From Malacoraja senta (lineage: Eukaryota), in NCBI GenBank assembly GCA_038087875.1, contig CM075977.1, positions 142,662,001 through 142,726,000 on the forward strand: DNA of 64,000 nucleotides, read 5' to 3'. Below are positions 4,200-56,851 of the stretch, piece after piece. Numbering within the stretch: the stretch's first letter is position 1; every line of letters starts with the position of its first letter. A program made the position numbers and the translations under genes. The notes under the pieces are model-generated. The model searched no databases. It was not told the origin of the DNA and saw nothing but the letters and a program-made list of their open reading frames with translations.

Positions 4200-5654
4200 A
4201 TTTCCTCGAAAACCAGGCGCAAAGACGCTGAGATTTTTACATATTTCGGTTGGGATTTAACTTGTGATTTCAGAAATCCACTCCTCTCTAGATTTCGTCA
4301 ATTATTTCCCCAGATTTTGAATAAAATTGTTCACAAAACATAAAAAAAATAAAAATCAAACTGCTGCATGAGATACAGTGCCACCTCACAGATCCAATCA
4401 CAATGGATCTCATTTACATATATGACATCACAATGGGACAGGTGTGGGAGATTGTAACCTTCACATGGTCCCACTAAAACCAAACTGCTGCATGTCACAG
4501 TGCCATTTCACAGATGTACAATCACATCAAAATGGGACAGGGGTGTGAGATCTCTCCCCCTCCCTGACATTTAAAAAAATATGAAGGTTGCCCAGCTGCT
4601 TACCTCACAATGCCTTTGCACCTGGCCCAACTGCCTCCAGGCCCCGCCCAGCTCTACCCCCACAGCTTGGCTGCTGGCCCCACCCGCTGACCTTACAATG
4701 CCTTTGCACCTGGCCCAACTGCCTCATGGCCCCGCCTGGCCCTGCCCCCCCTACCTGGCCCCACCCGGCCCCACCCTGTGACCTCACAATGCCTTTGCAC
4801 CTGGCCCAATTGCCCCCTGACAGTTAAAAAAAAAAACATTTGCTGTATTCATTGACAGCTTAGATCGGACCCACTGTGTGTGTGGTGGGGTCCTCCCCTG
4901 AATTCCATAGAGCTGCCGACAGCTTTCGTGCATGAGATGCGGACGATTCATTTCCAGAACATTCTGAACGCGTGACGCACGGTTGAATTTCGCTCTCTCT
5001 GTCTCGCCCCCTATCTCTCTCTCTCCCCATCTCTCTCTCCCCCCTCTCTCTCTCTCTCTCTCTCCTCCCTCTCTCTCTCTCCCCCCTCCCCTGCCCTCCC
5101 CCACCCTCCCTCCCCTAAACCCCTTTCCCGCCTCCCCTCCACCCCTCCCCTACCCCCTTCCCTCCACCCCATCCCCTCCCCACCCTCCCTTCTCCCCCTC
5201 CCTTCCCCTTCTCCCCCCCATTCCCCCTTCCCTTCCCCCCACTCCCCTCTCTCTCCTCCCCTCTCTCTCTCCTCCCATCTCTCTCACCCTTCCTCCCCCA
5301 CCATCCCCCCCTCACCCACCCTCCCTCTCCTCCCCTCCACCTCCCTCTCGGTTTCTTGCCCTTCTGTCTCTTCCCCTTTCTCTCTGTCTCTCCCCATTCT
5401 CTCTCTGCCCTCACTCTCTACCCCCCCCCTCTCTAGATGCGCCTGCGAGTTGGGGGCTATGCATCAGTGGATAGAGCGGTTATGGGGTAAAAGGAGCAAA
5501 TTAATTATATTAATATATCAAGGGGGTAGTTAGCGTGTGTGCGGGGGGGGTAGTTAGTGTGTGTGACACCGCATGCCGCCACCCCCCCAGCTCCCCCCCT
5601 CACCCGCAACCACACGTTGGGGGAACAGACCCAACTGGTCTGCACTTGGTCTAG
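4200..5654 (+). mobile_element. Non-autonomous Helitron-like element H1 (5' end in gap)
   Basis: 3' end is the cagacc-caact-ggtctg hairpin followed by cacttggtCTAG|t. Contains a CT-rich tract and three internal acctcacaatgcctttgcacctggccc repeats. Confidence 0.75.
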
Positions 5655-6119
5655 TAAATATTAAAAATATATATATATATATGTGTGTGTGTATACTTGT
5701 GAGTGTGTATATATACACACTGAACTTTTTTTTCTCTCGTTTAATATATTGTTTACAGTATACTATGTTTACATATTTTGTTGTGCTACAGCAAGTAAGA
5801 ATTTCATTGTTCTATCTGGGACATATGACAATAAAACACTCTTGACTCTCTCTTGTCATGGGGAATAAAGATTATGGAAAACCACATGGACAAACTCATC
5901 AGATGCCATTTGACTCAAAGTTGCTGAACTGGAAATTAGCTTATTTTAGGATTACCAGGGAATTTAGTCCCCTTCTGTGGTCCACCACTTCGTTCTTAGA
6001 TTTTTTTTGTTGCAGTCTGTTGTAGTAGCAACAATTTGTAAGATTATCTATTTTTGCGATGAAGAGAAGATTCCAATGAAGAGAAGATTCTTACAATATC
6101 TGTTGACCCCCTGACCAAA

Positions 6120-6760
6120 ATTATGGCACGCACACTCTTGTTCTGACTTGTGGGCTGCTTTGTCAAATCCACCCATGGCAGACTGTAAAGTGATCATGCC
6201 ATTATAGTGCATATAACCAATTTTACTTCACGAAGAGCAGCTCTGAACTGACTGGCTTTACAAAACGTACTGTACAAGCAGTACAGCTACAAAAGCACAT
6301 GGTCTATTGTTTATGCTCATTCATTGTGACGGCTGATTTGCATGTCCAAAGTCCTCAGTTTGCAAAAGAGAAAACATTACTTTGACATTACTTATTTTAT
6401 CTGATCCATCATAGGTGAAGAAAGGGAATAGCCAAGATGCTGACATTCCCTTGGAAACAGATGATAAAATAATACTATAATAAAATTTGCGCTAGTTTGT
6501 TCCTGTGCCATTTGAAAATCTTTCGGTAACGCACATTCTGCAAGGAATTAAGCAATGTTCGTCACAATCTTTTGAATGCTTGCGTGTATTGACTGTGCAT
6601 TGACTGCGCATGACGTTCAGAATCACATGCAAACCAAAAATAAATCTTACTACCATAATTGGTATAAGGGCAGGGACTTTGGATGGTATCGGGTGAACTG
6701 GTATGAAGTATGCCAAGATAAATACTGGAGCATGCATCCCATTTCTCAAACAATAATTTG
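6120..6760 (-). pseudogene. Degraded piggyBac-like transposase remnant
   Basis: IPSK.. and YGSKIYFWFACDSE followed downstream by MGGFD, in the order of piggyBac PSKP.KYG.K...CD and MGGVD. Confidence 0.45.
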
Positions 6761-9700: not shown

Positions 9701-10494
9701 CATAATATCTTCAGAAGCTATTACAAACCTAAACAAGCCAACAGCCCAAAGCCCATTCCAGCAGCAGAGTGGGATGGAGCTCACAAACCACTGGAGTTCT
9801 TCAAACATTTTGGTGTCTCCTATCCAGCTGAAACACAGCCTTGAGGACATGACAGCTGCTGCGTTAAATTTGGCAGGAACTATAACAGAAGGATATAGAT
9901 TTTATTAAGAAGGCTGTCATTCCATTGAAGCACTGCATCTCCCACCCATGACATCACTTGAGTGATTTTACAAACCTAACTGATGCAGATGCTTTACTAA
10001 AAAGACAGCTTAAAGAAAGTGCTCTCACCAGCGTGAGACACCTTGTTCCTCTATACTCCAGATCAGTTTGACATGTAGTAGTTATGGCTGAAGATTTCCC
10101 CAGCTGAAAACTTTCAAACCCGATCCTTAGTGTCTTCAGTTTCCATTGTTTTCCTTCTGAACAATGCCTCATTAACCATTCTAGTCCTAGGAAAGGCATT
10201 GCATCATACGTATGTTTCCTGATACTGAAACAATTCCATTGGCTTAAAACATATTGGGTTGGATTTTACCAGGAAAATGGCAGTAATTCTGCATGAAACT
10301 TCTGTATTTTCTCATGTAAACATCAGAACGTGTTTGATTTTGAGAATGCACGAACAGAAAAATCCAAAAATTGCTGAGAGCTGTTTGATGTTGTTTCTTC
10401 AAGAACACTCTGATGCTCCTCAGTCCCACTTACTGTTTGATCTGGAACAAAGACTTAATTCTCCATTAATTAATCTCAACGGGGTTTGCGGTCA

Positions 10495-10825
10495 TAAGGT
10501 CATAAGTGATAGGAGTAGTACTAGACCATTCGGCCCATCAAGTCTACTCCACCATTCAATCATGGCTGATCGATCTCTCCCTCCTAATCCCATTCTCCTG
10601 CCTTCCCCCCATAACCTCTGACACCTGTACTAGTCAAGAATCTATCTATCTCTGCCTTAAATATAGCCATTGACTTGGCCTCCACAGCCTTCTGTGGCAA
10701 AGAATTCCACAGATTCTCAGCCCTCTGTCCTCATCTCCTTCCTAAAAGAACGTCCTTTAATTCTGAGGCTGTGACCTCTAGTCCTCGACTCTCCCACTAG
10801 TGGAAACATCCTCTCCACATCCATG
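10495..10825 (-). mobile_element. CR1 3' fragment
   Basis: Similar to the 3' ends of other CR1 copies in the window. Confidence 0.7.
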
Positions 10826-12040
10826 TGAAGTGTTAAGAAACAATGGAAAAGTGCATTAGAACACCCAGCGAATAGCTGTCAATGAGGGAGACCTGTCTCT
10901 TTCTCTAATTGAGAGTAGTGTTCTGAGATGCATGGTTGTAGCTACAATGGAAGATTTACCCTTGTATTGAGGAAATCCTCATACATTCTGCAATCTCCTG
11001 AAAGATTATTGGCCTGTGTTTTTCTGTAATTGTAACATTATATCCTGCACTCTACTTCTTTGCACTTTTGCGCAGTCTGATGTACTTTTGTGTGTCATGA
11101 TTTGCCTGGATAATACGCAAAACAAAGTTTTCACAGTTTCTCAGTAAACATGACAATAGTAATAAACCAATACCAAAGCAATTTGGATAGAACACAATAT
11201 TTGTATAACAAGGGATGAACTGATTATAATCCAATTTCAGTCATGAATAAGAAAATCATTGAAAAATTACTTTTGGAAATTGGCAAGCAGAAAAAAATCT
11301 GCTTTGGAAAAAAATTCATGTAATCTCACTGCAATCATCAGATAATTCCCTTCTTTAAGGAAGGATGTTAATGTGTGGAAGTAGTTCAGAAATGGTTTAT
11401 TAGACTATTACCTGGAATGGAAGCTTCTTTTTAAAAGAAAGGTTATACAGGCAAGATTTTAAGTATTCACTTAAATTTAAAATTATGAAGATCATGAAAC
11501 ATCTTGAAAGGGTGGGTGTGAAGAGGAGTGAAGAGTGACAAACTAGTGGTTACTATTTAAAATAAGAAGTCATCCATTTAAGTCAGATTGATGTGAAATT
11601 CTTTGGAATTCTCTTCTGCAAAGATAGTCATAGCAGATTTTGAATGTTATAAGTTCGATTGATTCTTGATAAGCAAAGGGTGAAAGGCAGAAATGAGGGT
11701 TGAGACTACAGTCATATCACCCATGACCTTCTTGGATGTTGAAACTGGTTCAAACAGCTGAGTGGCTCACTCTTACTCCTAATTTATATGCTTACATGAA
11801 AGCATTCTCCTTAAGAAATTAATGTGTTTTGTTTTGTTTCTACAATTATTCCTTCTTGATCTTTTCCAACTGTGCTGAGCCCAGGTGGCCCAATATGCCC
11901 AATATGCCCAATTGCAAAACAAAGTAAAATCTGATCATCTCTGCTCATTCACTTTTGTTCTTACACAGGGAAAAAATCCAGAAAACCTTGCACTGCTTCT
12001 ATTTCTGCACTGAAATCAATGAAGGTAAGTAAGACATTAC

Positions 12041-14018: not shown

Positions 14019-14254
14019 CAAATTGTTAATGTTTATGACTAACAGTAAGGGTCTCACCGCCCATCCCTGAGGTACAGGGCGTGGGGGGATTGAAGTTGTG
14101 GAAACTGAAGAAGAACCATTGCAAGGGTGGGTATTTAACTTAAAGGACATAACTGCAGCAGATTACCATAAATGATCTGCTCAGTTGGGCCCAGTGATAG
14201 GACAGGCCTCGCATCCATTATGACAGACAGCTTCTTGCACAGACAATGCATTTA

Positions 14255-14770
14255 CATAGATACATAGACAATAGATGCAGGAGAAGGCCATTCGGCCCCT
14301 CGAGCCAGCACCACCATTCAATATGATCATAGCTGATCATCAACAATCAGTACCCCGCTCCTGCCTTCTCCCCATTTCCCTTGATTCTGCTAGCCCTAAG
14401 AGCTCTATCCAACTCTCTTTTGAATGCATCCAGTGAATCGGCCTCCACTGCCTTCTGTGGCAGAGAATTCCACAAATTCAGAACTCTCTGTGTGAACAAC
14501 ATTTTCCTCATCTCCGTTCCACCCCTTATTCTTAAACTGTGGCCCCTGGTTCTGGACTCCCACAACATCGGGAACATGTTTCCTGCATCTAGCCTGTCCA
14601 ATCCCTTAATAATGTTACATGTTTCTATAAGATCCCCTCTCATCCTTCTAAATTCCAGTGAATACAAGCCCAGTCGCTTCATACTTTCATCATATGACAC
14701 CAGTCCCACCATCCCAAGAATTAATCTTGTGAACCTACGCTGCACTCCCTCAATAGCAAGAATGTCCCTC
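14255..14770 (-). mobile_element. CR1 LINE 3' fragment
   Basis: ORF 14347-14772 contains DILAIEGVQRRFTR. Confidence 0.88.
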
Positions 14771-15117
14771 AAATTAGTTTCATTTGTAGATGAAAATCAC
14801 GAAGATGTCCAGACAAAAATTACATGCTGTTGAATCTGATGGTATATGTTCCTGCATCGATATAGCAGACCCACAGCAAACACAGTAGAAAATTATGGGC
14901 ACCATAATTCACATATTAACTATACTAATTTATACAAAACTATACAAAATTTATACAGAACTAGATCAAAAAACATTTTTGTTCACATAAATTGTGTTAT
15001 GTACTGCATATAAACAACGTTATTTTATTGAACAATGAAGACTTTTAGTAATAACTTCTATTTCCATCTATTACAAGCAGAGTTAATAATTCAACCAACA
15101 AACTACATGGGACATAC

Positions 15118-15272
15118 CATGAAGACGAATGAGCGAGTGCTATAATTCCAGTATCTGTAGCTGCTGTCCAACTGACATCCACAGAAGTTAGCTTGTGGCA
15201 AACTGCACTTGCATGGAGTAGAATTGAGTCCCCTGTCAGCTTAGGTCCACTGCAGCATGTAATGTAGAGTTC
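15118..15272 (-). CDS. F-box/LRR gene LRR exon (ELYITCCSGPKLTGDSILLHASAVCHKLTSVDVSWTAATDTGIIALAHSSS)
   Basis: cag acceptor and gtatgt donor. 155 nt, phase 0 in and phase 2 out. Cysteine-containing LRR pattern. Confidence 0.9.
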
Positions 15273-15391
15273 CTGTTTATTGGGAAATGTTACTTTTAAA
15301 ATAGGAACAGAATCAACATGGTATTAAAAGTTTTCATGTTGAAAAAGTATTTTTGTATAGATTTGCTCATATTGGACATATATATGTTTCA

Positions 15392-16387
15392 TAGGTTTCC
15401 CTCTTCCATCATAGATGAGGCCCTCATTAGGGTCTCCTTCATATCCTGCAGCTCCGCTCTTGCTCCCCCTCCCCCGTCATAACAGGGACAGAGTTCCCCT
15501 AGTCCTCACCTTCCACCCCATCAGCCGTCGCACACAGCATATAATCCACCGATATATTCGCCACCTCCAACGAGATCCCACCATTAGCCACATCTTCCCA
15601 TCTCCACCCCTTTCCGCTTTCTGCAGAGACTGTTCCCTCCGCAAATCCTGGTCAACTCGTCCCTTCCCACCCAAACCACTCCCTCCGCAGGTTTTATCCC
15701 CTGCAACCTCAGGAGATGCAACACCTGTTCCTATACATTCCCCCTCGACTCCGTCGAAGGACCCCGGCAGTCTTTTTAGGCGAGGCAGAGGTTCACTTGC
15801 ACCTCCTCCAACCTCATCTACTGTATTCGCTGTTCCAGGTGTGGACTCTTATATATCGGCGAGACCAAGCGCAGGCTCAGTGACGTTTCGCTGAACACCT
15901 CCTCTCAGTCTGCCTAAACCTATCTGATCTCCCGCTTGCTAAGCATTTTAACTCCCCCTCCCATTCCCACACTGACCTTTCTGTCCTGTGCCTCCTCCAT
16001 TGTCAGTGCAAATTGGAGGAACAGCACCTCATATTTTGCTTGGGCAATTTACACCCCAGCGGTATGAACATTGACTTCTCTAACTTCAAGTAACCCTTGT
16101 TTTCCCTCTCTCTCCATCCCTCCCCCTTCCCAGTTCTCCGACAAGACGTACGGTGTCTAACTACATTTTATCTCTTTGCTTTGTTGTTACTTTCTCCCAG
16201 CTAACAATGATCTATTCTACATTTTATCTATGTATCTCCTTCTCCCGACATCAGTCTGAAGAAGGGTCTCGACCTGAAACATCACCCATTCTCTCTCTCC
16301 ATAGATGCTGCCTGTCCCGCTGAGGTACTCCAGCATTTTGTGTCTATCTTCGGTTTAAACCAGCATCTGCATTTCCTTCCTACACAG
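15392..16387 (+). mobile_element. Penelope-like element 3' portion (RT C-terminus, GIY-YIG endonuclease, terminal repeat)
   Basis: PLVLTFHP and FTCTSSNLIYCIRCSRCGLLYIGETKR peptides. Possible tgtttca TSD. Confidence 0.85.
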
Positions 16388-16501
16388 TGTTTCACTTACC
16401 TGCCTCAAGTTAATTGCAATGAATGGATGTAATCTGGAAAGCTGAGAATGAGGAAATTGTGTTTTTTTGGATGTTGAGGTTTCATTGTGATATATTTGTT
16501 A

Positions 16502-19271
16502 TCTATCTATACATAGATAACTAAAACTCTGATCTTGTGCTCTTCCAGTTTGCGTGGTTTATATCTATTTGCGCAAAAACGGTACACGATAGTGCTACGA
16601 TGTTTCGCCAACTTACTCACCATTCTCATGTGCCCGAGTGCAACAAGTTTTGTTCTGATCTATGGTATATTTTAAAAGTTATTAAGGTTTAAAAATCTTA
16701 CAAACCACGCAGGCACAGATTGGTCTCTTCTCCTTACAGTCAATGCCACGGCCGGGACAGCAATGCCCCTTCCTGCACCATTGCCGCACTGATTGGCCGT
16801 GTCCGCTGTCAGTCACCTGGAGGTCGCCACCAGCGTCGCAGTGAAGGAGTGGCGGCGGCCGGCGAGGTGGCGGCACCCAATGTGTTGCTGCAGCTGCCCG
16901 ACATGTTGGTGCGGCTGCCCGACTTGTTGCTGTGGGCTGTGCGGTACCTAGTGGGGAGGGTGGTGCGCAGGCCAAGCCCGGGGACTGAGCTCGGGCCCCG
17001 GCTGGAGCCAAGGATGAGCCCAGTGACTGGGCCTGGGCTGGAGCCAAGCCCGGGGCTGGAGCTGGAGTGAGGGCCGAGCACGGAGCTTGGGATGGGACCA
17101 TGACCGGGGCCGAGAAAGAAGCCGTGGCCTGGAACCAAGGACGAGCCTGGGTCCAGGGTCAGGGACGAGCCCGGAGATGAAGTCAGGGCCTGGACTGGAG
17201 CCCAAGCGGTGGCCAAGCTGAGGGCTGGAGTCATGCCCAAGCCCGGGGCCTGGGTCAAGGCCGAGCTGGGGGTCTGGAGTTATGCCGAAGCCCGATCCCT
17301 GGCACGTAGTCCACGGCTTCATGACGGACCGGCTGCGTAGCGTCCGCCAGGACAATGTGTCCCAGCGCCTCGGGGGCTGCCCGGCCACCGCCATCCTGGA
17401 GCACAACCTCCGCTTCCTGCTCTGCGGGCAGCTCTGGCTCGGCCGCCTGCCACCCTCACCCCCGCCCCCGGCACAGCGAGCCCTGCTCCGTCGAGGCTTG
17501 CAAATGCTTCGGCCGCCTGCTAGCCGCCTACAGCCAGGGCCGGGCCGAGTACAAGAACCAGGCCAAGTTCCAGGCCCTGGTGCTGCTCTACGACCTGGGT
17601 AGGTGCTGGGGCAGGGAATGGGAGTGAGGGGAGGAGGATGAGGGAATGGGGTGGCGGGAGATGGGGTGGGGAGTGGGGTGGTAGAGGGTGATGGGGAGTG
17701 TGGAGGAGAGAGATGGGGAGGGGTGGAGGAAGGCGTTGGGGTGGGGTGGTAGAGGGAGATGGGGGGGGGGTGGAGGAAAGAGAGTGGGGAGGTTGGAGGA
17801 GGGAGATGGGGAGGGAAGTGGGTGGAAAGGTGGGTGGGGTGAAGTAGGAAGATAAGGAGAGTGGGGTGGAAATGAAGGGGTGGAGGAGGGAGATGGGTCA
17901 AGTGGTGAATGAGGGAGATGGGGAGGGGTGAAGGAAGAAGGGGGGAGTGGGGTGGAGGAATGAGATGTGGAAGAGGTGAGGGGTGGAGAGGGAGATGTAT
18001 AGGGGCGGGGGAGTCGATGTGGAGTGGATAAGGGAGATGGAAAAGAGGTGATGTTGGAGGAGAAATATGGGGTGGGGGAGGGAATTGTGGTGGGAGAGTG
18101 AGCGGAGAGGACAGAGGGTGGAGAAGGGAGTTGGGGAGGGAGATGGGGCTAGAGTGTGGGATGAATGAAGGAGGTGAGGAATATAGTGGAGTGGATGAGG
18201 GAGATGGGGAGGGGTGGGGGAGGAAAATGGTGGGGAGTGGATTGGAGAGGGAGATGGGACGGAGGAGTTGATGGAGAGGGGTGAAAGTGTGAGGTGGATG
18301 AGGGAGTGGGGAGGTGAGGGAGCAAGATGAAGATGGGGTGGGGGAGTTGGGTGGAAGAGGTAGATGAGAGGGAAAGTGGTGTGAAGGATGGAGTGAGGTG
18401 GAGGAGCAAAATGCTTGAGGAGGCAGGTGGGGTGGGAGAGTGTGGTGAAAGAGGGAGTGGGGAAACACAGGGAGAGTGGAAAGTGAACATTTTAAAAATC
18501 TACGAATGTTGGCAGCCTAAAATAAAAACAGAAAATGCTCAGCGGGTCAGGCAGCATCTGTGGAGAGGGAGAATGAGAGGGCGGTTTGGGATAAGGGGTA
18601 GTAGGAGAGATGGGTGGTGATGCTGGAGAGATGTGGGGTAAGGGAGAGAGGACAGGTGGAGGTAGGGTGTGAAGGGTGAAGATGGAGAGGTGAGGGAGAG
18701 GAGGGGATGGGGCAGGAGGGTTGAAGATGGAGAGATGTGGGATAAGGGAGAGGGTGATAGTGGGAGAGATGGGGAGGAAGGGGTAATGGAAACGGTGATA
18801 GTGGGAATGTGAACCCTGGCTACCTTTGTGTGCAGTTAGCACAGACTCTGCCTCTACGCCCCCCCCCCCCCCCCGCCCAGGTCAGGAGGGATAGTGGGGG
18901 GGGATAGGGGGAGGTAAGGAGTGGGGGGAGGTGGACGATAGAGGGATAGGAGTGGGTAGGAAGGGGAGAGGAGTTATGGTGGGAGGGAGGGAGGGAGGGA
19001 GGGAGGGAGGGAGGGAGGGAGTGTGAGGGTAGAGAAAAGGAGAAGGAGGGATTGAGGGAGAGGATGAGGAGAGGGGAAAGAAGTGGGGGGATGAAGAGGA
19101 GGAAGAGAGAGGGAGTGCTGGGGATGAGGAGAAATGAGCTGCGCCAGTGCAGTTGGGGCTATGGGTGAGTGGTGGAATATTGCGTTGGGGGAACGGGTTG
19201 CGTTGGGGGAACAGGTGAGTGCTGGAATATTGCGCTGGGGAGCAGACCCAATGGGTCTGCACTTAATCTAG
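16502..19271 (+). mobile_element. Non-autonomous Helitron-like element H2 carrying a SAC3D1-like fragment
   Basis: 5' end a|TCtatct...ataactaaaactctgatcttg. 3' end is the gcagacccaatgggtctgc hairpin followed by acttaatCTAG|t. A|T target, no TSD. Confidence 0.85.
16870..17598 (+). pseudogene. SAC3D1: Captured, frameshifted SAC3/GANP-domain (SAC3D1-like) exon fragment
   Basis: Collinear peptides RLPDLLLWAVRYLVGRV, FMTDRLRSVRQD, ILEHNLRFLLC and CFGRLLAAY..QAKFQALVLLYDLG match SAC3D1 motifs recalled from memory. Ends at a G|GTAGGT donor-like site. Contains stops and frameshifts. Confidence 0.8.
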
Positions 19272-19974
19272 TTATATATATTTACAAAAATTAAATACAA
19301 ATGACAAAAAGTGACTCTTTCAAATTTAATTAAGATTACATATAACTAAAGGTTGTTTGTAAACAGAAGGAAATATCAACCCTGAGATGTCACATACCAC
19401 ATACGGTAGGGTTACTTTCCAAATAGGTCATTTCTACTATTCAAGTGGCACTGATTCTGTTATAAATCCCGGGGTAATTTCATTCAAATATCCAATTATA
19501 CTGGTAAGGACAATATGTCACTCCACTGAGCAGTTATGGAAATTGTAAACATATTTACTTCATGATTAATTAGTAAACACCAAATTTAATGTAATGATAA
19601 GTAACCTGATTTCATCTTGAAAGTATTACTGATGGCTAGAGAGGGAGAAGGAATGAATAGATGCCATGTTTTGAATTAATTAAGGCTGGGACAAAGTGGC
19701 CACAGTGAACTGAACTGAATTGATCCCAGATAAGCTGCAGACCGTGAATGGGAATATCCAATTGAGTATTGGAACAAAACCTGTAGGAAAAAAATGCTCC
19801 ACTTGTGCAATTTAGCAAGACCATGTCAACAAACAACATATGGGGGGGGGGGCGAGGGGAGGGGGATGTCAGTTACAGAAATGGACAGAGAAATGGAAGA
19901 TGGAGTTTAATCTGAACAATTCATAAATTTATGCATTACGTTTTGGAAAGTATACAGTTAAGGGCAAAACCCTT

Positions 19975-29023: not shown

Positions 29024-29086
29024 TAGAGATGAATGCCAATTTCAAAAGAGAAGAACTAACCGGACCAAAAAAAAATCTGTTTGTAC

Positions 29087-39300: not shown

Positions 39301-39575
39301 ATGCTGCCCCTATATGCTTGTTATTTCCCCTTTGAAAGCCTTCCACTTGCCAGCCATTCTCTTTATCTGCAAACAGACTCTCAAAAGCAACCACATCAAG
39401 TTACCTAATGCTTCCAAAATCAGCTTTGCCTCAATTTAGGGCCGCTCNNNNNNNNNNNNNNNNNNNNNNNNNNNNNNNNNNNNNNNNNNNNNNNNNNNNN
39501 NNNNNNNNNNNNNNNNNNNNNNNNNNNNNNNNNNNNNNNNNNNNNNNNNNNNNNNNNNNNNNNNNNNNNNNNNNN

Positions 39576-41146: not shown

Positions 41147-42215
41147 TACATAACTAAAGCTCTGATCTTGTTATCTTCCGGTTTGCGCGGTTATTCTATT
41201 TGCGCCAAAAACGGTATGCGATAGCACTACGATTTTTTGCCAGCTTACTCGCCGTTCTCCTGAGCTGCAATTGCTCCAAGTTTTGTTCCGATCGGTGGTC
41301 TAATGTAAAAGTTAGCAATGTTTACAAAATCTTAAAAACCGCACATGCACAGATCGATCTCCTCTCCTGCCGTTCAGCATCACGTGGATTGGTCTTTTCT
41401 CCTGTCACTCCACGGGACAGTCCGCCCCTTCCTGCGCCATCGCGTCTTTACTGGAGCTGAGGGAGGCTCTGGATGGCCGGCGGAGGTCTCCAACTGGACA
41501 CAATTTTCAGAGGGAGATTGGGTCGGGGACCCGACCCGAAGCAGCCCAGCATTGGAGACCCAGCCCAGCATCGGAGACCCAGCCCAGCCCAGAGTCGGAA
41601 ATGTCGCCGATGTCACCAAACGGAAAACGGAGGCTCTGATCCCGGCAGAGGAGGACGACCAGCACCCGCTGTGAGTCTCCATCCAAATGTCAGCTGCAGC
41701 CACTTCCCCTCTGGTCCCCCTCGCTGGCTCCTGCCCCCCTCCCCCGTGATACTACCCTCTCCCCACAACCCCCGTCTTTTCTCTGAGCTCCCTCACCCCT
41801 TCCACAACCCTCCCCACCCACACCCCTCCCGCTCCCACACCCCACGCGCCCACACCCCGCCCGCCCACACCCCAGCCCGCCCACACCCCAGCCGCCCACA
41901 CCCCCCCCCCTCCACAGCCCCCCTCTCCCACAACCCCACACCCCCACCCCTCCCCCACACACCCACCCCTCTTGGACACATTTCTTCATGTCCCCATCGC
42001 AACGTCAGCTGCAGCCACTTCCCCTCTGGTCCCCCTCGCTGGCTCCTGCCCCCCTCCCCCGTGATACTACCCTCTCCCCCACAAACCCCATATTTTCTCC
42101 AAGCTCTCTCTCCCCCCACAACCCCCCTGCCACACCGCTCCCGCCCACACCCCACCCCCTCCATTGCCCACACCCCCCCGCCACACCCCACCCACATCCC
42201 CCTCCCCCATCGCTT
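41147..42215 (+). mobile_element. Helitron-like element H6 (3'-truncated), abutting H5
   Basis: Begins ataactaaagctctgatcttg, homologous to the H2 5' end. No 3' hairpin seen. Confidence 0.72.
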
Positions 42216-42221
42216 ATCTCC

Positions 42222-43300
42222 CTGCACATAATCCATATCCCTCCATTCCACTATTGTAGTTGCCTCAATCATCAACCTTGGCAGCGCATTTGAGATAATC
42301 ACCATCCTCTGTGTAAAATGTTTGTACCGCACATCTCCTTTAAACTTTGCCACTTTTGCCATAAAGTTTTCACTCAAGTATTTGACTTTTGCATCCTGGG
42401 AAAAAAAGTTTCTGAATGTTTACCCTATCTATGCATTTCATAATTTTATACATTGCTCAGTCTTCCCACAACCTCCTGCAACCCGGAGAAAACACCCCCT
42501 AATCCAGACATCATTCTGGTAAACCTCCTTGCACCCTTTCCAAAACCTCCACATTCTTCCTGTGCAACTAGAACTGCAGGAAATCTTCCAAATGCAGCCT
42601 AACCAAATCCTATAAAACTGCATCATGACTTCCTGACTCTTATGCTTAATGCCCCAACCAATGAAAAAACACCTCCAATATGCCTTCTTTATACTTTATC
42701 TAGTTGTGTTTGGACCTTAAGAACCCTCTTGTACATCAATACTGTTAAGGGTCATGCCATTAACTGAATATTTTGCCCTTACATTTGACCTCCAAGTGCA
42801 ACACGTCACACTTGCTCGGATTAAACTCCTTCTGCCATTTCTTCACCCATTTCTGTAGCTGATTCATATCCCACTGTATAGTTTGACAGCCTTCGTTATA
42901 GTCTGCGACCCCAGCTACCTTGTGTCATCTGCAAACTTACAAACCAACCCATTTATGTCCAAGTCATTTATATATGGCACAAATGGTAGAGGTCCCAGCA
43001 TAGATCCCTGCAAAACTCCATGATCATAGATCTCCTGCCTAAATATTGTCCGACCACTACAACCCTCTGCCTTCTATCAGTAAGCCAGTTCTGAATCCAT
43101 ACAGCCAAGTCACTGTTAATCTCGTACATCCAAATCTTCTGGATCTGCCTACCATGAAGGACTTTATCAAATGCCTTACTAAAATCCATGTAGACAAATT
43201 TCCAACACCCTATCCACATCGATCACCTTCGTCACCTCCTCAAAAAAGTCAATCAAGTTAGTAAGACACAACCTGCCATGCACAAAGCCATGCTCTTGAT
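42222..43300 (-). mobile_element. Older CR1 LINE
   Basis: QHGF..GR.CLTNL and YMDFSKAFDKV motifs. Confidence 0.8.
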
Positions 43301-47470: not shown

Positions 47471-48533
47471 AGAGATTAGAAACATAGAAACATAGAAGAT
47501 AGGTGCAGCAGTAGGCCATTCGGCCCTTCGAGCCTGCACCGCCATTCAATATGATCATCGCTGATCATCCAACTCAGTATCCTGTACCTGCTTTCTCTCC
47601 ATACCCCCCTGATCCCTTTAGCCACAAGGGCCACATCTAACTCCCTCTTAAATATAGCCAATGAACTGGCCTCAACTACATTCTGTGGCAGAGAATTCCA
47701 GAGATTCACCACTCTCTGTGTAAAAAATGTTTTTCTCATCTCAGTCCTAAAAGATTTCCCCTTTATCCTTAAACTGTGACCCCTTGTTCAGTGACTTCCC
47801 CAACATAGGGAACAATCTCCCTGCATCTAGCCTGTCCAACCCCTTAAGAATTATGTAAGTTTCTATAAGATCCCCCCTCAATCTTCTTAATTCCAGCGAG
47901 TACAAGACGAGTCTACCCAGTCTTTCCTCATATGAAAGTCCTGACATCCCAGGAATCAGTCTGGTGAACCTTCTCTGTACTCCCTCTATGGCAAGAATGT
48001 CCTTCCTCAGATTAGGAGACCAAAACTGTACGCAATACTCCAGGTGTGGTCTCACCAAGACCCTGTACAACTGCAGTAGAACCTCCCTGCTCCTATACTC
48101 AAATCCTTTCGCTATGAATGCTTTATTTTTTTTATTTTTTATTTTTTTATTTTTTTATTTATTAGAAGTACATTACATTACAACCACATACATTAGTACT
48201 CGTCGCTTATATCTTCTTACAATTAATGTACTCCGTTTGTTTTTTACACTAGAAAAGGGAAAGGATGAGATTGAAAGAAAGAAGAAAGTGAAGGAAAAAG
48301 TGAAAGTGTAGAAAATGTGACAACAAGAAAGAACGAAGACCCTATAAGAAAAAAATTAAAAACAAAAGAAAAAGAGTTAAGAAATAGACCCTAGAAAAGA
48401 AGGAGAAATAGAAAGAGGGAAAAGAGAAAAACAAATAGTATTTATGAGCATTACGCAAATGGGACATACCAACTCTCCAACTTTCATCCCCCCTTACCTG
48501 ACTTCAGTTTTTTTTTTAAGGTACCTTTGCACC

Positions 48534-51500
48534 CTATATTTGTAATAATTCTATAAATGCAGACCACGTCAGGTGGAAGTGATCTGGTTTACCTGCCAGG
48601 AGGAGTCTTATCTCTTCTAGGTGTAATGTTTCGAACATATTTGAAATCCACATGTTTATAGTTGGTATTGGAGCCTTCTTCCAAAATTTTAGGATTAGCT
48701 TTTTTCCAGTTATTAACCCGTAGTCTATTAGTTTCTTTTGAAACACATTTAGTTCTGGACCATCTTCCATTATTCCGAAGATAATCCATTCTGCTTTGGG
48801 TATCAGTTTTATTTTAAATAATTTTGTAAAGATTTCAAAAATTTCAATCCAAAATGTTTGAATTTTTGTACAGAAAACAAATGAGTGCGCTATAGTAGCT
48901 TCTTGGGATTGACATTTATCACAAATGGATGATACATTTGGGAAAATTTTATGGATTTTAGTTTTGGAATAATATAATCTATGTAAAATTTTAAATTGTA
49001 TTAAAGTGTGTCTTACATTAATTGAACATTTATGCACATTTAATAAGTGTTCATTCCACCTTTCCTTTGAAATTTTAATAGCTAACTCTTGTTCCCAGTC
49101 TCTTCTGATACCCTCCGTAGATGGTATTTCTACATTTAAGATAATATTATACAAATCTGATATTAAATTTTCTGATTCTGCTTTTATCTGCATTGCATCA
49201 TCCAATACATCTGCTGGGCTATTGTAATGATCTTTTGTATATTTTTTCAAATAGTCGCATATTTGAAATTATTTAAATTATTGATTATTTCCGAGTTTAT
49301 ATTTTATTTGTAATTGTTGAAATGAAAGTAATTTTCCAGTTTCATATAAGTCACCGAACGTTTTAATTCCTAGTCTATCCCAATGTGTGAAAGATTTATC
49401 TATAGTAGAGGGATTAAACGAAGGGTTATTAACTATGGGAGATAAAAGTGATAAATTTCTTCATTTTAAATTTTGTTTTATTTACTTCCAAATTCGGATT
49501 GTGCTATGTATAATTGGGTTCTTATTATAATTTATATTATTCAGTTTCATTGGTGAGAGGAGGATCGCTCCAATGTTTCCAGAGGAGCAATCCTCTTTCT
49601 CCATTACAATCCAATCCACTTGCTGGGCAGAGTTATCCATCAGTTGAATCATATTTTTAATATTTAATGACCAATAATAATACATGAAATTAGGTAGTGC
49701 TAAACCCCCTAATACTTTAGGTTTATTCAAGTGAGTTTTTTGTATTCTATGTGATTTATAGTCCCATATAAAATTAGTGATATCTGAGTCCAGTTTTTTT
49801 TTAAACTTCTTTGGTAAGTATATAGGAATCGATTGAAATAGGTATAAAATTTGTGGTAGAAAGATCATTTTTATTGCATTTATTCGGCCTATAAAAGACA
49901 TCGGGAGCGTTTTCCAAAATTTAACTAGTGTGTTTAATTTATTAAGTAGCGGATCAAAATTTGTTTTAATTATACCTTGATATGTTCTAGTAATTTCGAT
50001 TCCCAAGTATTTATATTTTTCTGTAGCTATTTTAAAAGGGAATTTTAAAAGATGTGTTGAATCTTTTGGTTTTATTGACATAATTTCACTTTTATTCCAA
50101 ATTATTCTGTATCCCGAAAAAGATCCAAAGTCTTCAATTAAATTTAATATATTTGGTATAGTGATTTGAGGTTTTGTAATGTACAGTAATATGTCATCCA
50201 CGTATAAAGATATTTTATTATTTGAATCTTTAGTATTATACCCATGGATATCAGGGTGTATTCTAATTTTTTCTGCTAGCGGTTCAATAATAAGAGCAAA
50301 CAACTGTGGTGATAATGAGCATCCTTGTTTATTTCCCCTTGATAGTTGGAATTTCGAGGATAATATGTTATTAGTTAATATTCTAGCTGTAGGTTTATTA
50401 TATAATAATTTAATCCATAAAATAAATTTCTCTCCCAGTTGGAATTTTTGTAATATTTTATCCATATAATTCCATTCTACTTGGTCAAATGCTTTTTCAG
50501 CATCCAGCGAAATAATTGATCATTCTTGTTCTTCAGATTTGTGTGAGTGCATTATGTTGAGTAAACGTCTCATATTGTTAGATGAGTATCTCTTAGGGAT
50601 AAACCCCATCTGATCTGGGTTTATTAATTTACTAATATATTTACTTAATCTTCTAGCTAATGTTTTCGCTAATATTTTTTGATCTGTGTTTAACAATGCT
50701 ATAGCTCTATATGAACCCGGTTCTTCTAAATCTTTGCCTTTCTTAAGTATTAGTGTAATCGTTGATTCCGCTAATGTATCAGGTAGTATTTGTTTTTTAA
50801 AAGCATATTGGTACATTTTTTGTAATCTTGGTATAATTTTATCATAGAAGCTTTTATAAAATTCATTAGTAAATCCATCCGGACCTGGTGTTTTTCCATT
50901 CTTTAGTGAGTTTATTGTATCTTCTAATTCCTTAATTGAGATTTGTGCACCCAATTCCTCTTGTTCCTTCAACTCTAACTTTGGAAGATTACAATTATCC
51001 AAAAACTCTGTGATTTTATTGGAATCAATTGTCGTTTTAGATGTATACAAATTCTCATAAAATTGCGCAAATCTTTTATTAATATCCTTCGGTGTGGTTA
51101 ATAATTCCCCTTTATCTGATTTAATCTTTGGGATAGTATGTTCTTTTTCTCGTTTTTTTAACTGGCGAGCCAAAAGTTTATGCGGTTTATCCCCAAATTC
51201 AAAGTGCTCTTGTTTTGTAATTTGAAAAAGTCTTAAGTTTGGCTGATAATAATTTATTTAATTTAAATGTCAAAATTATTATTTTATTATGTTTATCTAT
51301 TGATGGATCTTTAGCATTATCTATATCCATTTGTCTAATAAGTTCTTCTAACTGTCTTTGTTCATTCTTATTATTTTTATTTTGAAAAGCTTGATATGAA
51401 ATTATAATACCCCTAATGTATGCTTTAAAAGATTCCCATAATACAGTAGACGATATATCTGGAGTGTCATTTATTTGAAAAAAGGCATCCATTTGTTCTT

Positions 51501-52321
51501 TTAAATATATACTCGCTTGTGGATCTTTTAGGATTTGAGAATTAAATCTCCAAAACGATTTATTCTTAGACATTCCTTCCAGTTTTAAAAAGAAAGTTAG
51601 TGGAGAATGGTCTGAAATCGAATTTGTATGGTATGTTGGGTTAAAAGTATGAGGGATTAATTTTGTATCCAGCAGGAAATAATCTATACGTGAGTATGTT
51701 TTGTGTACCATTGAATAAAACGAGTATTCCATGCCAGTTGGATTAACAATTCTCCAAACATCTCCTATATTAGTATTGTTTATGTAAGTATTGAGAAGTT
51801 CACTGGTTTTAGATTTCATATTCCCTCTGTTTTTGGCTTGATTTATCTAAATACGGATCTAAAACACAGTTAAAGTCTCCTCCTATTATAACATTTTGAT
51901 AGTTAGACTCTGCAATTATGTTCAAAATTATATTTTAAAAATGAGGGTTGTCAAAGTTAGGCGCATATATATTTACCAAAGTAATTGGAGTATCATGAAT
52001 TTCTCCATTAACTATTAAGTATCTCCCTTCGATGTCTGTTCTGATATTCTTTGCTTTAAATGGTATACCTTTTCTTATAATGATTGACGTACCTCTAGAT
52101 TTCGAAGTAAATGAAGAATGGTATGTTTGACCTATCCATTTCGCCCTCAACCTAGCTTGATCCTGAGATTTTAAATGAGTTTCTTGTAAGAAGATAATGT
52201 CAGAGTTGTACAGTTTCAGCTGAGCTAGTATCTTACCCCTTTTAATAGGTTCGTTAATACCTCTTATATTCCAACTACAGAATAAGATTCCTCCTAGGTT
52301 CTTTTGTTTAGCATCTTGCAT
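48534..52321 (-). pseudogene. L1 ORF2 (APE endonuclease, RT, C-terminal Zn knuckle), frameshifted
   Basis: Motifs SWNIRG, FLQETH, SRIDYF, SDHSP, PGPDGF, QGCSLSP, YVDD and CDKC...H...C. Confidence 0.92.
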
Positions 52322-53124
52322 TTTGAATAATTATAGTACCTTTAAATCTTATGGTGCATCCATATCCCAGGTCTTTGGGTATTGGGGGAACTTTTGAATT
52401 TCTAGGTTTTGTTGGTATATCCATTTTACGCTTATCACTAAACACAAAACACAAACATGTGAGTTTATGTGGTAATAAAAAATAAAAAAAAAAAGTGAAA
52501 ATACAGTGTCTAATATAGTCGGCACTGTAGCAAGTGGCCCACCTGTAGGTGGGAAAAAACCTTGTTTCGACTTCCATTGTGATGTTAAACAAATAGCTCT
52601 GCTCTCTTGGTTAATCATAACATATTAAAATATTAAAACGGGGCCTCACATTCAGATATATAATACAATTTTACCCTATATATTTCATTATAACATATCA
52701 TGCATATATCGCAATTTTAGCTACTAATTATTAAACAGATACTTTTGACTTCAATAATAGTCAACTGTTGGTTGAAGGGGTTAACGAGACGTGCCCCTGG
52801 ACCTAAGCCAGGTGCTCGTTTCTCTTCCCCTCCTCCCACTTATAGATAAGGTTTCAATTTATTAAAAATTCATATTAGTATGTTAGTTCATTATTTTTTA
52901 TTTTTATTTTTTTTATTTTTGTTAGCATTCTAATCTAACATGAATAACTTATTAAGTTATTAATAGGATGTTCTTACAATTGGTTTTAATATTATAGTCT
53001 ATTAACAAATAAATGCTTCTGGTATATACCATTCCCTTCTGTTCACTGTTTACTCATTTTGAACAGAAAGTGACCTTGATTCAAAATTCCATAGATAACA
53101 GTCCAGCCATCCCCAGACAAAGCA

Positions 53125-54240
53125 TTACTTGGAATGGTTCAGCTCTACCAAACACCCATTTGATTTCTGTTTTTCAATGATACTTTGGGCATATTTGAAC
53201 GCATCTTCAGGCTTTGGAAATGACTTTTCAGAACCCTTGAAAGAAATACGCATTTTAGCTGGATAAAAAACCCCGTATCTGATCCATTCTTTCCCTCTTA
53301 AAAGATCCTTAACCTTCTCGAATTTGTTTCTTTTTTGCACAATTTCATACGGGTAGTCCCTGAATATCTTAATAATGTCATTGTCCACCCGCAGCTGTAT
53401 TCCGTATTTTATTTTGCTCATAACATCTTCCAGTTCTAAAATATCCCGAAATTTCACAATAATATGACGTGGATCAATTTTTCCCGCACCAGATCTCTGT
53501 TTAAATCTTGGAACACGATGAGCCACTTCGATTTTCGGTTCTTTGGAAAGATTAAGCAGTTGTTTACTAAGCCCATGGCAAACTCACGAACATCCTCCCC
53601 CTCGGCTCCCTCTGAGACTCCAAGAATTCTCAAATTCTGTCGTCTAGAGCGAGCTTCCAGGTCCAAGCATTTGTCTGAGACTTTCCCCAGTTGAATCACC
53701 ATCTGTAGTGAAGTTTGTTCATTTTCTTGCTTCATTTGCTCATGTTCTTGCCTCATTTTCGCCATGTCTTCAACCACTCGAGCCGTGTTTTTCTCCAATT
53801 CCGTAATTGTGCGCATACTTGCAGCTACTGTTTCAAGCACAGCCGTGAACCTGTCCGTAGTAGTTTCATCCATCTTGTCCATTCTCCCCGATAGTCCATC
53901 TTTCACATCATCAATTCGTTTATTTATAATGTCCAGTGAATCAATCACCTTCTGATTACCAGCCTCAATAGCCTTCTGATTACCAGCATTTGTATCCTTC
54001 ATCATCTTTTCCATTTTTTTCATCATATTTTCCATCATATTTTTATTTTCATCCAAAATCTTATCTTTCATATTTTTCGCTGATTTCTTCAAATCATCAA
54101 ACTCTTAACTTGGCTCTTGTATCCATTTCTGCAGCCACTTCAGAGACTTCAGGGGTAACTTCTCCTTCAGGCTTCTTCTGGTCTCTCAGCAGCTTTTTCA
54201 CTGATCTCTGAGGGCTCTCAGCTGGAGGCAGTTTACTCAT
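53125..54240 (-). pseudogene. L1 ORF1 (coiled coil + RRM/CTD), frameshifted
   Basis: Motifs LEARSRRQNLRILGVSEGAE, PRHIIVKF, IFRDY and YPAKMRI. ATG at 54240. Confidence 0.85.
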
Positions 54241-55363
54241 TTAAAAGGCTTTAAACCACCGTTTAAAACATCGCACTTACTGATGACGGCTCCTATACTC
54301 AAATCCTTTCGCTATGAATGCTAACATACCATTCGCTTTCTTCACTGCCTGCTGCACCTGCATGCCTACTTTCAATGACTGGTGTACCATGACACCCAGG
54401 TCTCGTTGCATCTCCCCTTTTGCCATGTACTCTTGACTCTTACTCTACAATCTTGCACTATTCTGCTGTTTTGCACTTATTATTGTATTCATCATTCCAG
54501 TTTGTATAGTGTGTACTGTTGACTCTGTGAGTTTCATGTGAACAAGGAATTGCAATGTCCTCTGCTATGACAACATTTAACACAAATCTAATTTGAATCT
54601 GTTCCTTCAATAGATCAAAAATTCCTTCATGGATGCTCTTCTACTCTCTTACTTTTCCACTTTCAAGGCAAACCCTAAACCTACCTCATTGATTCAGGTT
54701 CTTTTGTGTCATATGCCCAAGTATGTGGCTTTGGGTCAGACTTTACTTGGTATGTGCTATGGAATTCCTTCTTGTCTTTAGCAAACATACAAATATAAAT
54801 TTCTCTAGATGAAATAGTTGAAATGCAGAGCTGTGGTAAACAGATTAAAAAATTGATGTTTACTATATTCTTCTACAAAATAATTATTTTTTTGCGTAGA
54901 ATCCAATGTGTAAATTTTTGAGAAGTTATGAAAATCCAAGTGATTCCTGTGAAACCATTAACAGCTGATGCACTTTCACATCAGCACATTTACCACGATG
55001 AACAACTTAGCGAAAAATGAGAGATTTATTTTACAGAATATATAATGGAAAATGTCAGGATTTATAGAAATACTAGACTAAGTGGGACCCGTTGGGTCCC
55101 ATGTTCACACGGGAGGGCTGGTCCCCAACGCAATATTCCACCTCTCCACCAATTCCAATATTGGTGGCCAGTGGTGGGGGGGGGGGCTTTCTGGAGCGCT
55201 AGTATGGGTATTGTGGGCTGATGGGACTGGTTTCCAGTGGGCTAGTATGGACATTGTGGGCCAACTCGATTATTGGGGTGACAGCTCAGTCACTCAAGCC
55301 TGATGTGCTGGCAGCTCACTCACGGCTGGTGGGCGAGCAGTTGATTCACGGCTATTCCTTGAA

Positions 55364-55710
55364 ATTCCATTTCAAGCAGGGTGCAAGCCCACCAAATTCA
55401 AATGCAGTTTCCTACCATTTCATGCAGGGTGCAAGGCCACCGAATTCAAGTGCAGATTCATACCACTTCAAGCAGGGTGCAGGGCCACCAAACTCAAGTG
55501 CAGTTTCCTACCACTTCAAGCAGGGTGCAAGGCCACCAAATTCAAGTGCAGTTTCATACCACTTCAAGCAGGGTGCAAGACAACCAAATTGAAGTGCAGT
55601 TTCATACCATTTGAAGCAGGTTGCAAGGCCACCAAATTCAAGTGCAGTTTCATACCATTTCAAGCAGGGTGCAAGGCCACCAAATTCAAATGCAGTTTCA
55701 TTCCATTTCA
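55364..55710. repeat. 48-bp minisatellite, ~7 copies (inside H7)
   Basis: Unit tttcaagcagggtgcaaggccaccaaattcaagtgcagtttcatacca. Produces a 16-aa periodicity in the ORF track. Confidence 0.9.
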
Positions 55711-56093
55711 AGGACGGACCATAAAACCACACAAAACACCGCATAAACACCACACTCACAGTTCAGTAGACATTCAGTGTGTTCAGTTGATTCACAGCTC
55801 AGATAGTGTCGTGACCTCTCCTTCCCCCATCTTGCAGAGACTGAGCCACACCCACACTTCCGGGTTTTATAATCCCTTCCCACCAGAAGGGGCGTGGCCT
55901 TCATGGCGTGATTGACAGGAGAGAGATTCTCAACTTTTTTTTAAACACTAATAACACTTTTATTTTTCATTGATGGGAAGAATCCTCTGCACCTGATGAG
56001 CGGAGGGGGACTGAGTAAGATGGCCAAAAATCACAGCCGTAAGTGGTAGCGTTTTATCTAAAATCAATATAGAGTGCAAACAGGAAGTTGTCA

Positions 56094-56445
56094 AGTTACC
56101 ACCACTAACATCCATTTGCAGTGCAGCATTTCAAAGCAGTTACCACCACCAACAATCATTTGCAGTGCAGCATTTCAAAGCAGTTACCACCACCAACAAC
56201 CATTTGCAGTGCAGCATTTCAAAGCAGTTACCACCACCAACAACCATTTGCAGTGCAGCATTTCAAAGCAGTTACCACCACCAACAATCATTTGCAGTGC
56301 AGCATTTCAAAGCAGTTACCACCACCAACAACCATTTGCAGTGCAGCATTTCAAAGCAGTTACCACCACCAACAACCATTTGCAGTGCAGCATTTCAAAG
56401 CAGTTACCACCACCAACAACCATTTGCAGTGCAGCATTTCAAAGC
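56094..56445. repeat. 44-bp minisatellite, 8 copies (inside H7)
   Basis: Unit agttaccaccaccaacaaccatttgcagtgcagcatttcaaagc. Copies are nearly identical, with no spacers. Confidence 0.95.
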
Positions 56446-56851
56446 AATCACATTTTCATTTTCAAACCACATTAAGGGCACTCACAGTTGAGTAGACATG
56501 TGTTCAGTGTTATTCACAGCTCAGAGAGACGTGACCCTCTCACTTCCTCCATCTTGCAGAGACTGAGTGAGGCCAACACTTCCGGGTTTTATAGTCCCTC
56601 CCCCCTCCCACCAGCAGGAGCAGCAGAGAGAATGTCAACATTTTTAAAACATTATAAACTCTTATTTTTCATCGATGGGAAAAATCCTCTTGTCCTGCGC
56701 AGCGGAGGGGGACTCTGAGTAAGATGGTCAAAAATCACAGCCGTAAGTGGCAGCGATTTTTCAAAAATCATGAAACAGAAAAACAGGAAGTGGTCAAGAT
56801 CTTACTTTTAGTAATATAGATAAATGCTGTGCCCATCAGTCACCCTATTAT

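Follow-up and report, generated by a model that had tools for sequence, protein, structure and literature searches.

Gene-capturing Helitrons are well known from maize and bats. TC...CTRR-type ends and a hairpin are among the features that define canonical Helitrons (PMC6544945). In bats, the element HelibatN3 carries the promoter, exon 1 and part of intron 1 of NUBPL, gene 5' ends are over-represented among Helitron captures, and composite or end-bypass transposition has been documented (PMC4224331). Experiments with Helraiser indicate that the stem sequence of the hairpin can be exchanged, that its loop cannot, and that the hairpin is the terminator (PMC4778049). Here, we describe seven copies, H1 to H7, of a Helitron-like element in a 64,000-nucleotide stretch of contig CM075977.1 (the window), and we conclude with high confidence that they belong to a single canonical, non-autonomous Helitron family of a batoid (skate-like) genome. 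The copies, some of them truncated or hidden by assembly gaps, total ~10.4-11 kb of the window (Table 1), and one of them, H2, carries a contiguous piece of a SAC3D1-like host gene.

Shared ends of the seven copies

Six sites have a 3' terminus of ~35 nt in common, composed of a short G+C-rich hairpin with an AAY loop followed by CACTTRRTCTRG, and the next base is T in all six. The terminal bases fit the CTRR pattern, reading CTAG in five ends and CTGG in one. A degenerate 24-nt motif for this terminus recovered three of the six ends at two or fewer mismatches, compared to 0.00 expected by chance, and the 5' motif ATWACTAAARYTCTSAYCTTG matched four times, compared to 0.04 expected. A profile made from the aligned ends detected exactly six tails in the window, and an nhmmer head profile detected six heads of ~180-225 bp: five at element starts (H2, H4, H5, H6 and H7) and a truncated one inside H7. 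The copies with both ends, H2, H4 and H7, read A/TC...CTAG/T (slashes mark element boundaries). These three and a copy in the skate Rhinoraja longicauda (position 15966 of locus L001) begin TC(TN)TATA..., the TC start of canonical Helitrons, and H6 lacks the first 4 nt. The terminal 30 bp are 70-97% alike at the 3' ends, where they are chain-linked at 80% or more, and 60-73% alike at the 5' ends. By the usual terminal-30-bp rule the copies are one family with several subfamilies. The general layout begins with a CpG-rich 5' head (~200-230 bp, starting TC(TN)TATAYWAC), continues with an interior slot and frequently a purine-rich pre-tail, and closes with a tail of 40-130 bp that ends in a 6-8-bp hairpin, a spacer of ~10-12 nt and CTRG.

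The terminal hairpin folds in five of the six copies, where its 6-8-bp stem lies 10-12 nt short of the end; the exception is H4, whose hairpin has decayed. It occurs as two types, CAGACCC...GGGTCTG in H1, H2 and H3 and GGGACCC...GGGTCCC in H5 and H7, between which two stem pairs covary (CG to GC, AT to GC) while the AAY loop is unchanged. In a covariation test, 90% of cells were paired, compared to 77% in shuffled alignments (none of 500 reached 90%) and 10-49% with a slid partner. A covarying stem with a constant loop agrees with the Helraiser hairpin experiments (PMC4778049). A second small hairpin (CCCAT-loop-ATGGG) is found just upstream of the terminal hairpin at 41090-41125, at 55095-55130 on the minus strand and at L001 17950-17975; it overlaps the 5' arm of the terminal hairpin, so that the two folds are mutually exclusive.

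The relation between the two ends and the flanking bases fit the element type as well. In H2, H4 and H7, complementarity of the 5' 40 nt to the 3' 200 nt was no better than in shuffles, so no terminal inverted repeats (TIRs) were detected, and the flanks are identical over 3, 1 and 1 nt, which is the chance level and gives no consistent target-site duplication (TSD). An A precedes TC in all three complete copies and in one Rhinoraja copy, and T follows all six 3' ends. Identity with a short or long interspersed nuclear element (SINE or LINE) was considered and rejected: no Rfam family reached the gathering score in a scan of the whole window, and the copies have no A-tail and no TSD. The first-pass annotation, which had proposed canonical rolling-circle Helitrons with H2, H4 and H7 lying complete between A and T and free of TSDs, is upheld by the ends, the hairpin, the lack of TIRs and of a consistent TSD, and the absence of SINE or LINE features. 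Its attribution of the shared ends to all seven elements stands in part. Six tails and five element-start heads are present, whereas no 5' end can be seen for H1 or H3, a gap takes in the tip of H5, and H6 is without a tail and its first 4 nt.

Head similarity in H1 (4200-4400) and upstream of H3 (24950-25250) was not above that of shuffles; therefore, no more than a 3' part is demonstrated for either copy. One assembly gap (25631-25775) falls inside the CT-rich tract of H3. The same type of tract lies on either side, no contig spans the gap, and the ungapped equivalent in H1 is ~350 bp long; continuity of H3 across the gap is plausible. Another gap (39448-39575) conceals the first ~21 nt of H5 and its 5' junction, and the gap at 23126-23325 falls between elements.

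The ratio of observed to expected CpG is 0.7-1.4 in heads and leaders, compared to 0.39 for the window, with H7 depleted. The heads at 16502-16735, 39576-39755 and 41147-41370 contain a perfect palindrome, TTTGCGCAAA, with a C/EBP-like core, TTGCGCAA. The same three heads retain most of their CpGs, and H4 has decayed from CpG to TpG or CpA at matching positions.

SAC3D1-like cargo of H2 and the interiors of other copies

The interior of H2 is captured host DNA. Two open reading frames (ORFs) in different frames, 17282-17602 and 17355-17627, match Pfam SAC3_GANP (E 1.1e-8 and 0.058) and end at a GT donor. In an exhaustive phmmer search the top matches were P0001 (68% identity, E 7.7e-25) and P0002, which bear the source names SAC3 domain-containing protein 1-like of R. 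longicauda and SAC3D1 of Mobula birostris; best protein matches from a skate and a manta support a batoid origin of the window. Exon 1 of H2 has 68-78% amino-acid identity to the Rhinoraja protein, which is encoded by an intact 446-aa ORF in two exons. At this parent locus, L001, exon 1 occupies 10001-10858 (aa 1-286), a purine-rich intron 1 of 4.4 kb extends to 15253, and exon 2 starts at 15254. H2 is collinear with L001 over 16817-18886. Positions 16817-17600 correspond to aa 27-286 with an identical donor context, a 442-nt alignment extending into the intron has 85.5% nucleotide identity, 17601 to ~18880 aligns to the purine-rich intron, and the acceptor stretch at 18831-18875 matches the polypyrimidine tract and AG of the parent at 93%. 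The copy lacks the ATG and the promoter or upstream region of its parent as well as the first ~26 codons, and it stops at the start of exon 2. The cargo of H2 is thus a single contiguous host genomic piece (partial exon 1, intron 1 and acceptor) set between backbone modules. Because it aligns to intron 1 of L001, the part of H2 that resembles a G-rich minisatellite is captured intron.

A PDB sequence search with the H2 exon as query gave no match. The H2 cargo did not turn up in any RNA run, among runs that seem to include none from the source organism. Two short SAC3_GANP proteins from the phmmer list (P0005 and P0006; contigs L003-L006) were rejected as genes of unrelated organisms, with no head, tail or nucleotide similarity. 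A near-identical second SAC3D1-like gene, differing in the number of EPG/VVPEP repeats in exon 1, is present on an unplaced 6.6-kb R. longicauda contig (L002), perhaps as a haplotig or after a recent duplication. An extremely high-copy SINE-like piece (~18480-18593) falls inside the intron-derived cargo of H2.

In H4, H5, H6 and both modules of H7, the G+C-rich DNA just after the head contains a TATA- or CCAAT-like motif and leads into a short exon-like segment and a GT donor, which reads CCATGA/GTAAGG in H4, GCCATGG...CCG/GTGAGT in H5, GCT/GTGAGT in H6 and ACT/GTGAGT in H7 (here the slash marks the splice site). A forced alignment of these leaders reaches 43% column identity, no more than chance. 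A host origin of the leaders, which we infer, would be consistent with the bias toward gene 5' ends in bats (PMC4224331). Other parts of the interiors recur between copies: H1 and H3 have ~400 bp in common at 77%, H4 and H5 have a related minisatellite block in common, and H2 and H4 have a purine-rich pre-tail in common. The CCAAT-containing block of H2 (16736 to ~16812) is common to H6 and absent from the parent gene, which makes it element backbone and not cargo. In H5, the 24-bp array repeats the donor region of the element itself in tandem, and modules A and B of H7 are 78% alike, with head B lacking ~22 nt.

Related copies lie downstream of the parent gene in Rhinoraja. A complete Helitron (L001 15966-18005) lies 230 bp downstream of the SAC3D1-like gene and a second follows it (15966-19400 in all); both contain several CCAAT (GATTGG) boxes and an ATG-exon-GTGAGT block that differs from the leaders in the window. 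The second of the two reads MAAGRKSMRQRLAAARLLLPAAMAAWGPR ahead of the donor. The head of H6 directly follows the CTGG of H5 (41146/41147) and is missing its first 4 nt, and the same tail-to-head junction occurs in Rhinoraja between the CTAG at L001 18005 and a head that lacks TCTR (18005/18006). Junctions lacking exactly TCTR are therefore seen in two species at unrelated loci, and the TCTRG of the tail could double as the start of the following head. Since the upstream flank in Rhinoraja ends in TTATA and not TCTA, simple nested insertion offers no obvious explanation, and the recurrent junction may be the footprint of concatemeric or circle-junction integration instead.

The strongest alternative accepts the family and holds that cargo swapping by capture is overstated. 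According to this alternative, H2 alone has host DNA, a backbone leader with its TATA- or CCAAT-like motif, exon-like stretch and GT donor diverged by subfamily, and the minisatellites and low-complexity tracts grew in place. The block next to the head of H2 that recurs in H6 and not in the parent gene, the self-derived array of H5, the likeness of the two H7 modules, and the minisatellite block of H4 and H5 and pre-tail of H2 and H4 that are held in common are all as it would predict, and no parent gene is identified for H4, H5, H6 and H7, whose peptides are too short for a protein search. However, the leaders of these four copies cannot be aligned beyond chance, four species have contigs in which head and tail meet without the interior of H4, and the Rhinoraja copies have yet other exon and donor blocks. 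We consider this alternative unlikely while granting it a real minority chance. It is very improbable that the transfer ran in the opposite direction, with the annotated Rhinoraja gene derived from a Helitron-borne copy. Such an origin might be suspected from the two Helitron heads located 230 bp and 2.3 kb downstream of the gene and from its near-identical copy on the 6.6-kb unplaced contig. However, the Rhinoraja gene has its intact two-exon ORF of 446 aa, no head occurs in the 10 kb upstream and no tail flanks the gene, the sole tail motif of the locus being the one that ends the downstream Helitron at 18005; it is the H2 copy that lacks the first ~26 codons, is frameshifted and ends where exon 2 starts.

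These results bear on four further proposals of the earlier annotation. The 24-, 44-, 48- and ~57-bp minisatellites and the GA/CT tracts were all found. The interiors do vary, although not every copy has a different one, given the modules common to H1 and H3, H4 and H5, and H2 and H4. Sequence capture is established for H2 by its match to exon 1, intron 1 and acceptor of the SAC3D1-like gene and is proposed for H4 to H7. The idea that promoter-like blocks are cargo does not hold for H2, where the block is backbone common to H6, and the captured promoter and exon of H4 to H7 stay putative.

Spread, age and genomic setting

Logan contigs of public runs were placed on 25776-29600 and 16200-19600. 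Species are coded, A being the source organism (run X1) and B to F relatives that match the locus at 23-30% of sampled words. Depth in unique bins was ~25 in A (range ~25-60), 8 in B, 12 in C, 70 in D, 12 in E and 8 in F. Summed contig depth, which is not a copy number and is read only as thousands of related copies per species, reached 675,682 (A), 68,983 (B), 103,449 (C) and 955,238 (D) in the tail bin of H4, 131,309 (A), 47,594 (B), 40,629 (C) and 309,007 (D) in its head bin, and 917,227 in the tail bin of H2 in A. Across species A-F, the termini have 10^3-10^4 times the contig depth of single-copy flanks. In D, 150 contigs match up to CTAG and the T at 26175 and then enter unrelated AT-rich DNA. 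In four species, some contigs pass straight from the tail of H4 (27786-27796) to its head (28832-28840) and omit ~1,045 nt of interior; other copies therefore combine these ends with another interior or with none. The coding bins of H2 (17226-17567) had 70-800x unique depth in A and 20-260x in B, E and F. These values point to a single capture of the SAC3D1 piece followed by amplification to roughly 10^2 copies. A scan of metagenomes with the tail motif gave 0 matches.

The tested insertions are old. Contigs of single-copy depth bridge the 5' junction of H4 in B (28955-29600) and C (28946-29600), its 3' junction in D (27131-27775), and both junctions of H2 in E and F (16360-16593 and 19171-19600). 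Because these contigs differ from the window by ~5-7% in the flanks, H2 and H4 occupy the same sites in relatives that are 5-7% diverged and were inserted before those species split. No empty site of H2 or H4 was found in the five coded relatives (B-F), as every bridging contig contains the element.

Several points weigh against reading the seven copies as one canonical, sequence-capturing Helitron family, among them the limit on summed depths given above. No empty site was found, so the A/T insertion target is inferred from the flanks, and the TC(TN) repeats allow more than one position for the first 5' nucleotide. No RepHel-encoding autonomous element with the family termini lies in the window. 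Host origin is demonstrated for the cargo of H2 only. H2 contains neither an old tail in its interior nor a second head, traces to be expected of a capture by simple read-through or composite transposition.

Two other explanations of the elements have little standing. Classification as Helentron-type non-autonomous elements (HINE or DINE-1-like) is suggested by the internal micro- and minisatellites and the 3' stem-loop, which resemble DINE-1, and Helentrons are known in fish. However, the ends are TC...CTRG, the flanks are A and T and not T/T, and terminal or subterminal inverted repeats do not rise above shuffles, so that we regard this classification as highly improbable. That the shared ends arose by chance or as an assembly artefact has next to no probability: four assembly gaps do touch or flank elements, but the chance expectations of the motifs are 0.00 and 0.04, and these ends recur in contigs of six coded species and in the independent Rhinoraja assembly.

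All seven copies sit between an F-box exon and candidate leucine-rich repeat (LRR) exons on the minus strand (Table 1), and H4 and H7 are in the sense orientation of this host gene. From the translated exons it is reasonably supported that H1 to H7 lie in introns of one FBXL-like F-box gene. The first-pass annotation was correct in expecting a high-copy family (supported by the depth, loose ends and joints of contigs from six coded species) and a chondrichthyan genome (best matches from skate and manta), and its placing of the elements in the introns of one gene receives reasonable support from the F-box exon and the FBXL-like LRR ORFs.

The window contains other repeats. An L1-like LINE at 48537-54104 on the minus strand has long open frames, a reverse transcriptase (Pfam RVT_1, E 1.2e-24), an endonuclease-side ORF and a GC content of ~0.29-0.36, together with an ORF1-like coiled coil and a weak L1 RBD match. 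An abundant family of LINE 3' ends, whose translations contain FTQRVVNLWNSLP, includes three youngest copies that are 92-95% alike (3132-3970, 47477-48122 and 62115-62953, plus strand) and older copies at 14254-14777, 19976-20311, 33515-34008 (minus), 36570-36716 (minus) and 61331-61869 (minus). SINE-like pieces at 16200-16427, 18480-18593 and 26800-27055 have summed depths in the millions in all species compared. Two 214-bp direct repeats (35497-35710 and 36186-36399; 100% identity, 689 bp start to start) look like the long terminal repeats (LTRs) of a very small, young LTR element.

Table 1. Coordinates of the Helitron copies, host-gene exons and assembly gaps in the window (position 1 is its first base)
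Feature	Position	Strand	Description
H1, Helitron 3' part	4200-5654	+	tail 5432-5654; hairpin CAGACC/GGTCTG; ends CTAG/T; 5' limit cut by gap 3976-4199
H2, complete Helitron	16502-19271	+	A/TC...CTAG/T; alternative start 16506 possible
H2 backbone parts	head 16502-16735; leader 16736 to ~16812; tail 19137-19271	+	
H2 cargo part 1	16817-17600	+	SAC3D1-like exon 1, ~codon 27 to GT donor; decayed, frameshifted
H2 cargo part 2	17601-18886	+	purine-rich, intron-1-derived; polypyrimidine tract and AG acceptor 18831-18875
H2 purine-rich pre-tail	18890-19136	+	backbone module common to H4 (28136-27866)
H3, Helitron 3' part, H1 type	25533-26174	+	CT-rich tract broken by gap 25631-25775; tail 25966-26174
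H4, complete Helitron	27706-29029	-	head 29029-28832; tail 27795-27706 with decayed hairpin
H4 interior	leader 28834-28640; minisatellite 28568-28223		leader with TATA-like motif, ATG and GTAAGG donor; 57-bp minisatellite; purine-rich pre-tail
H5	39576-41146	+	head from profile position 22 on; tail 41038-41146 ending CTGG/T
H5 interior	minisatellite 39858-40219		leader with GCCATGG...GTGAGT; 24-bp minisatellite
H6	41147-42235	+	head adjoins last base of H5, without first 4 nt (TCTR); H2-type leader; exon-like block and GTGAGT donor; tail-less, other repeat begins ~42240
H7, complete, CpG-depleted Helitron of two modules	55073-56820	-	tail 55156-55073
H7 module A	head A 56820-56615; minisatellite 56446-56094	-	44-bp minisatellite
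H7 module B	head B 56097-55917; minisatellite 55712-55367	-	truncated internal head; 48-bp minisatellite
Heads by nhmmer	16511-16734; 41147-41368; 39576-39755	+	
Heads by nhmmer	29022-28832; 56821-56615; 56097-55917	-	last one internal
Last bases of 3' ends	5654; 19271; 26174; 41146	+	
Last bases of 3' ends	27706; 55073	-	
F-box exon of host gene (ORF containing exon)	58764-59027	-	Pfam F-box-like E 6.4e-12; SKP2 F-box
Candidate LRR exon of host gene	15048-15323	-	Pfam LRR_6 E 0.0057, below cut-off; weak
Candidate LRR exon of host gene	483-791	-	PDB FBXL2 E 2.6e-8, FBXL17 E 5e-5
Assembly gaps (N), n=4	3976-4199; 23126-23325; 25631-25775; 39448-39575		

Possible mechanism and relation to known Helitrons

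By analogy with what is established for Helitrons (Helraiser, PMC4778049), a RepHel protein acting in trans would nick at the 5' TC, unwind 5' to 3', pause at the hairpin and cut after CTRG, and the resulting single-stranded circle would integrate between A and T of AT-rich DNA. Cargo could turn over when composite or read-through transposition involves neighbouring or truncated copies, and repair-mediated filling and in-place growth of minisatellites probably add to this turnover. If transposition sometimes runs from one head to the tail of another copy, the substrates or products to be expected would look like the tail-to-head pair of H5 and H6, H7 with its two heads, or H6 without a tail.

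We speculate, as a rather doubtful extension of these findings, that the family disperses CpG-island-like cassettes of leader, exon and splice donor genome-wide and, separately, that the tail-to-head junction marks concatemers or circle junctions. That heads and leaders retain CpGs even where a copy predates the species splits would be in line with hypomethylation in the germline, and thus perhaps with promoter activity, at thousands of sites in skate genomes. If so, sense copies such as H4 and H7 could give host genes alternative first exons. A more immediate consequence concerns annotation, since SAC3D1 pieces on Helitrons can be mistaken for genes or exons when skate assemblies are annotated.

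The kind of element described here is well known, and we found no description of it for cartilaginous fishes. In the full-text literature, Helitrons of cartilaginous fishes appear at superfamily level only (e.g. whale shark, PMC8455134) and nothing ties Helitrons to skates; Repbase and Dfam lie outside this scope. Duplication of gene pieces by vertebrate Helitrons is well documented mainly in vesper bats, to which the skate adds a second, independent lineage. Such a lineage makes it possible to ask whether the bias toward 5' portions of genes is general to Helitron capture, for how long the cassettes persist, and whether new exons or promoters arise from them where genomes evolve slowly. The skate family is suited to such questions, with thousands of copies, cargo across exon-intron junctions and copies common to several species.

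Among known systems, DINE-1 and HINE elements resemble the skate family in their very high copy number, internal tandem repeats and 3' stem-loop, whereas the subterminal inverted repeats and T/T targets of HINEs are absent from it. Among vertebrates other than mammals, Xenopus is also reported to have annotated Helitron families that affect its genome; the Xenopus family is reported to have been horizontally transferred, whereas the skate data carry nothing on horizontal transfer (PMC12001565). Helitrons of maize and other plants are likewise non-autonomous, have only termini in common, carry intron-containing gene pieces and are assigned to families by the terminal 30 bp. Plant Helitrons often chain pieces of several genes, in contrast to the one slot and the large amount of low-complexity and minisatellite DNA of the skate family. 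A good vertebrate parallel is offered by Helibat of vesper bats (HelibatN3, PMC4224331) and Helraiser (PMC4778049), which have in common with the skate family a vertebrate host, TC...CTAG ends, a hairpin terminator and thousands of copies. In Helibat, too, 5' portions of genes including an exon-intron junction were captured and then amplified, and composite copies arose from two elements. The skate family differs from Helibat in its batoid host, in head and tail sequences that are unrelated, in a capture (H2) that starts within exon 1 and covers the whole intron to the acceptor, and in the age of the tested insertions, which are old and common to several species.

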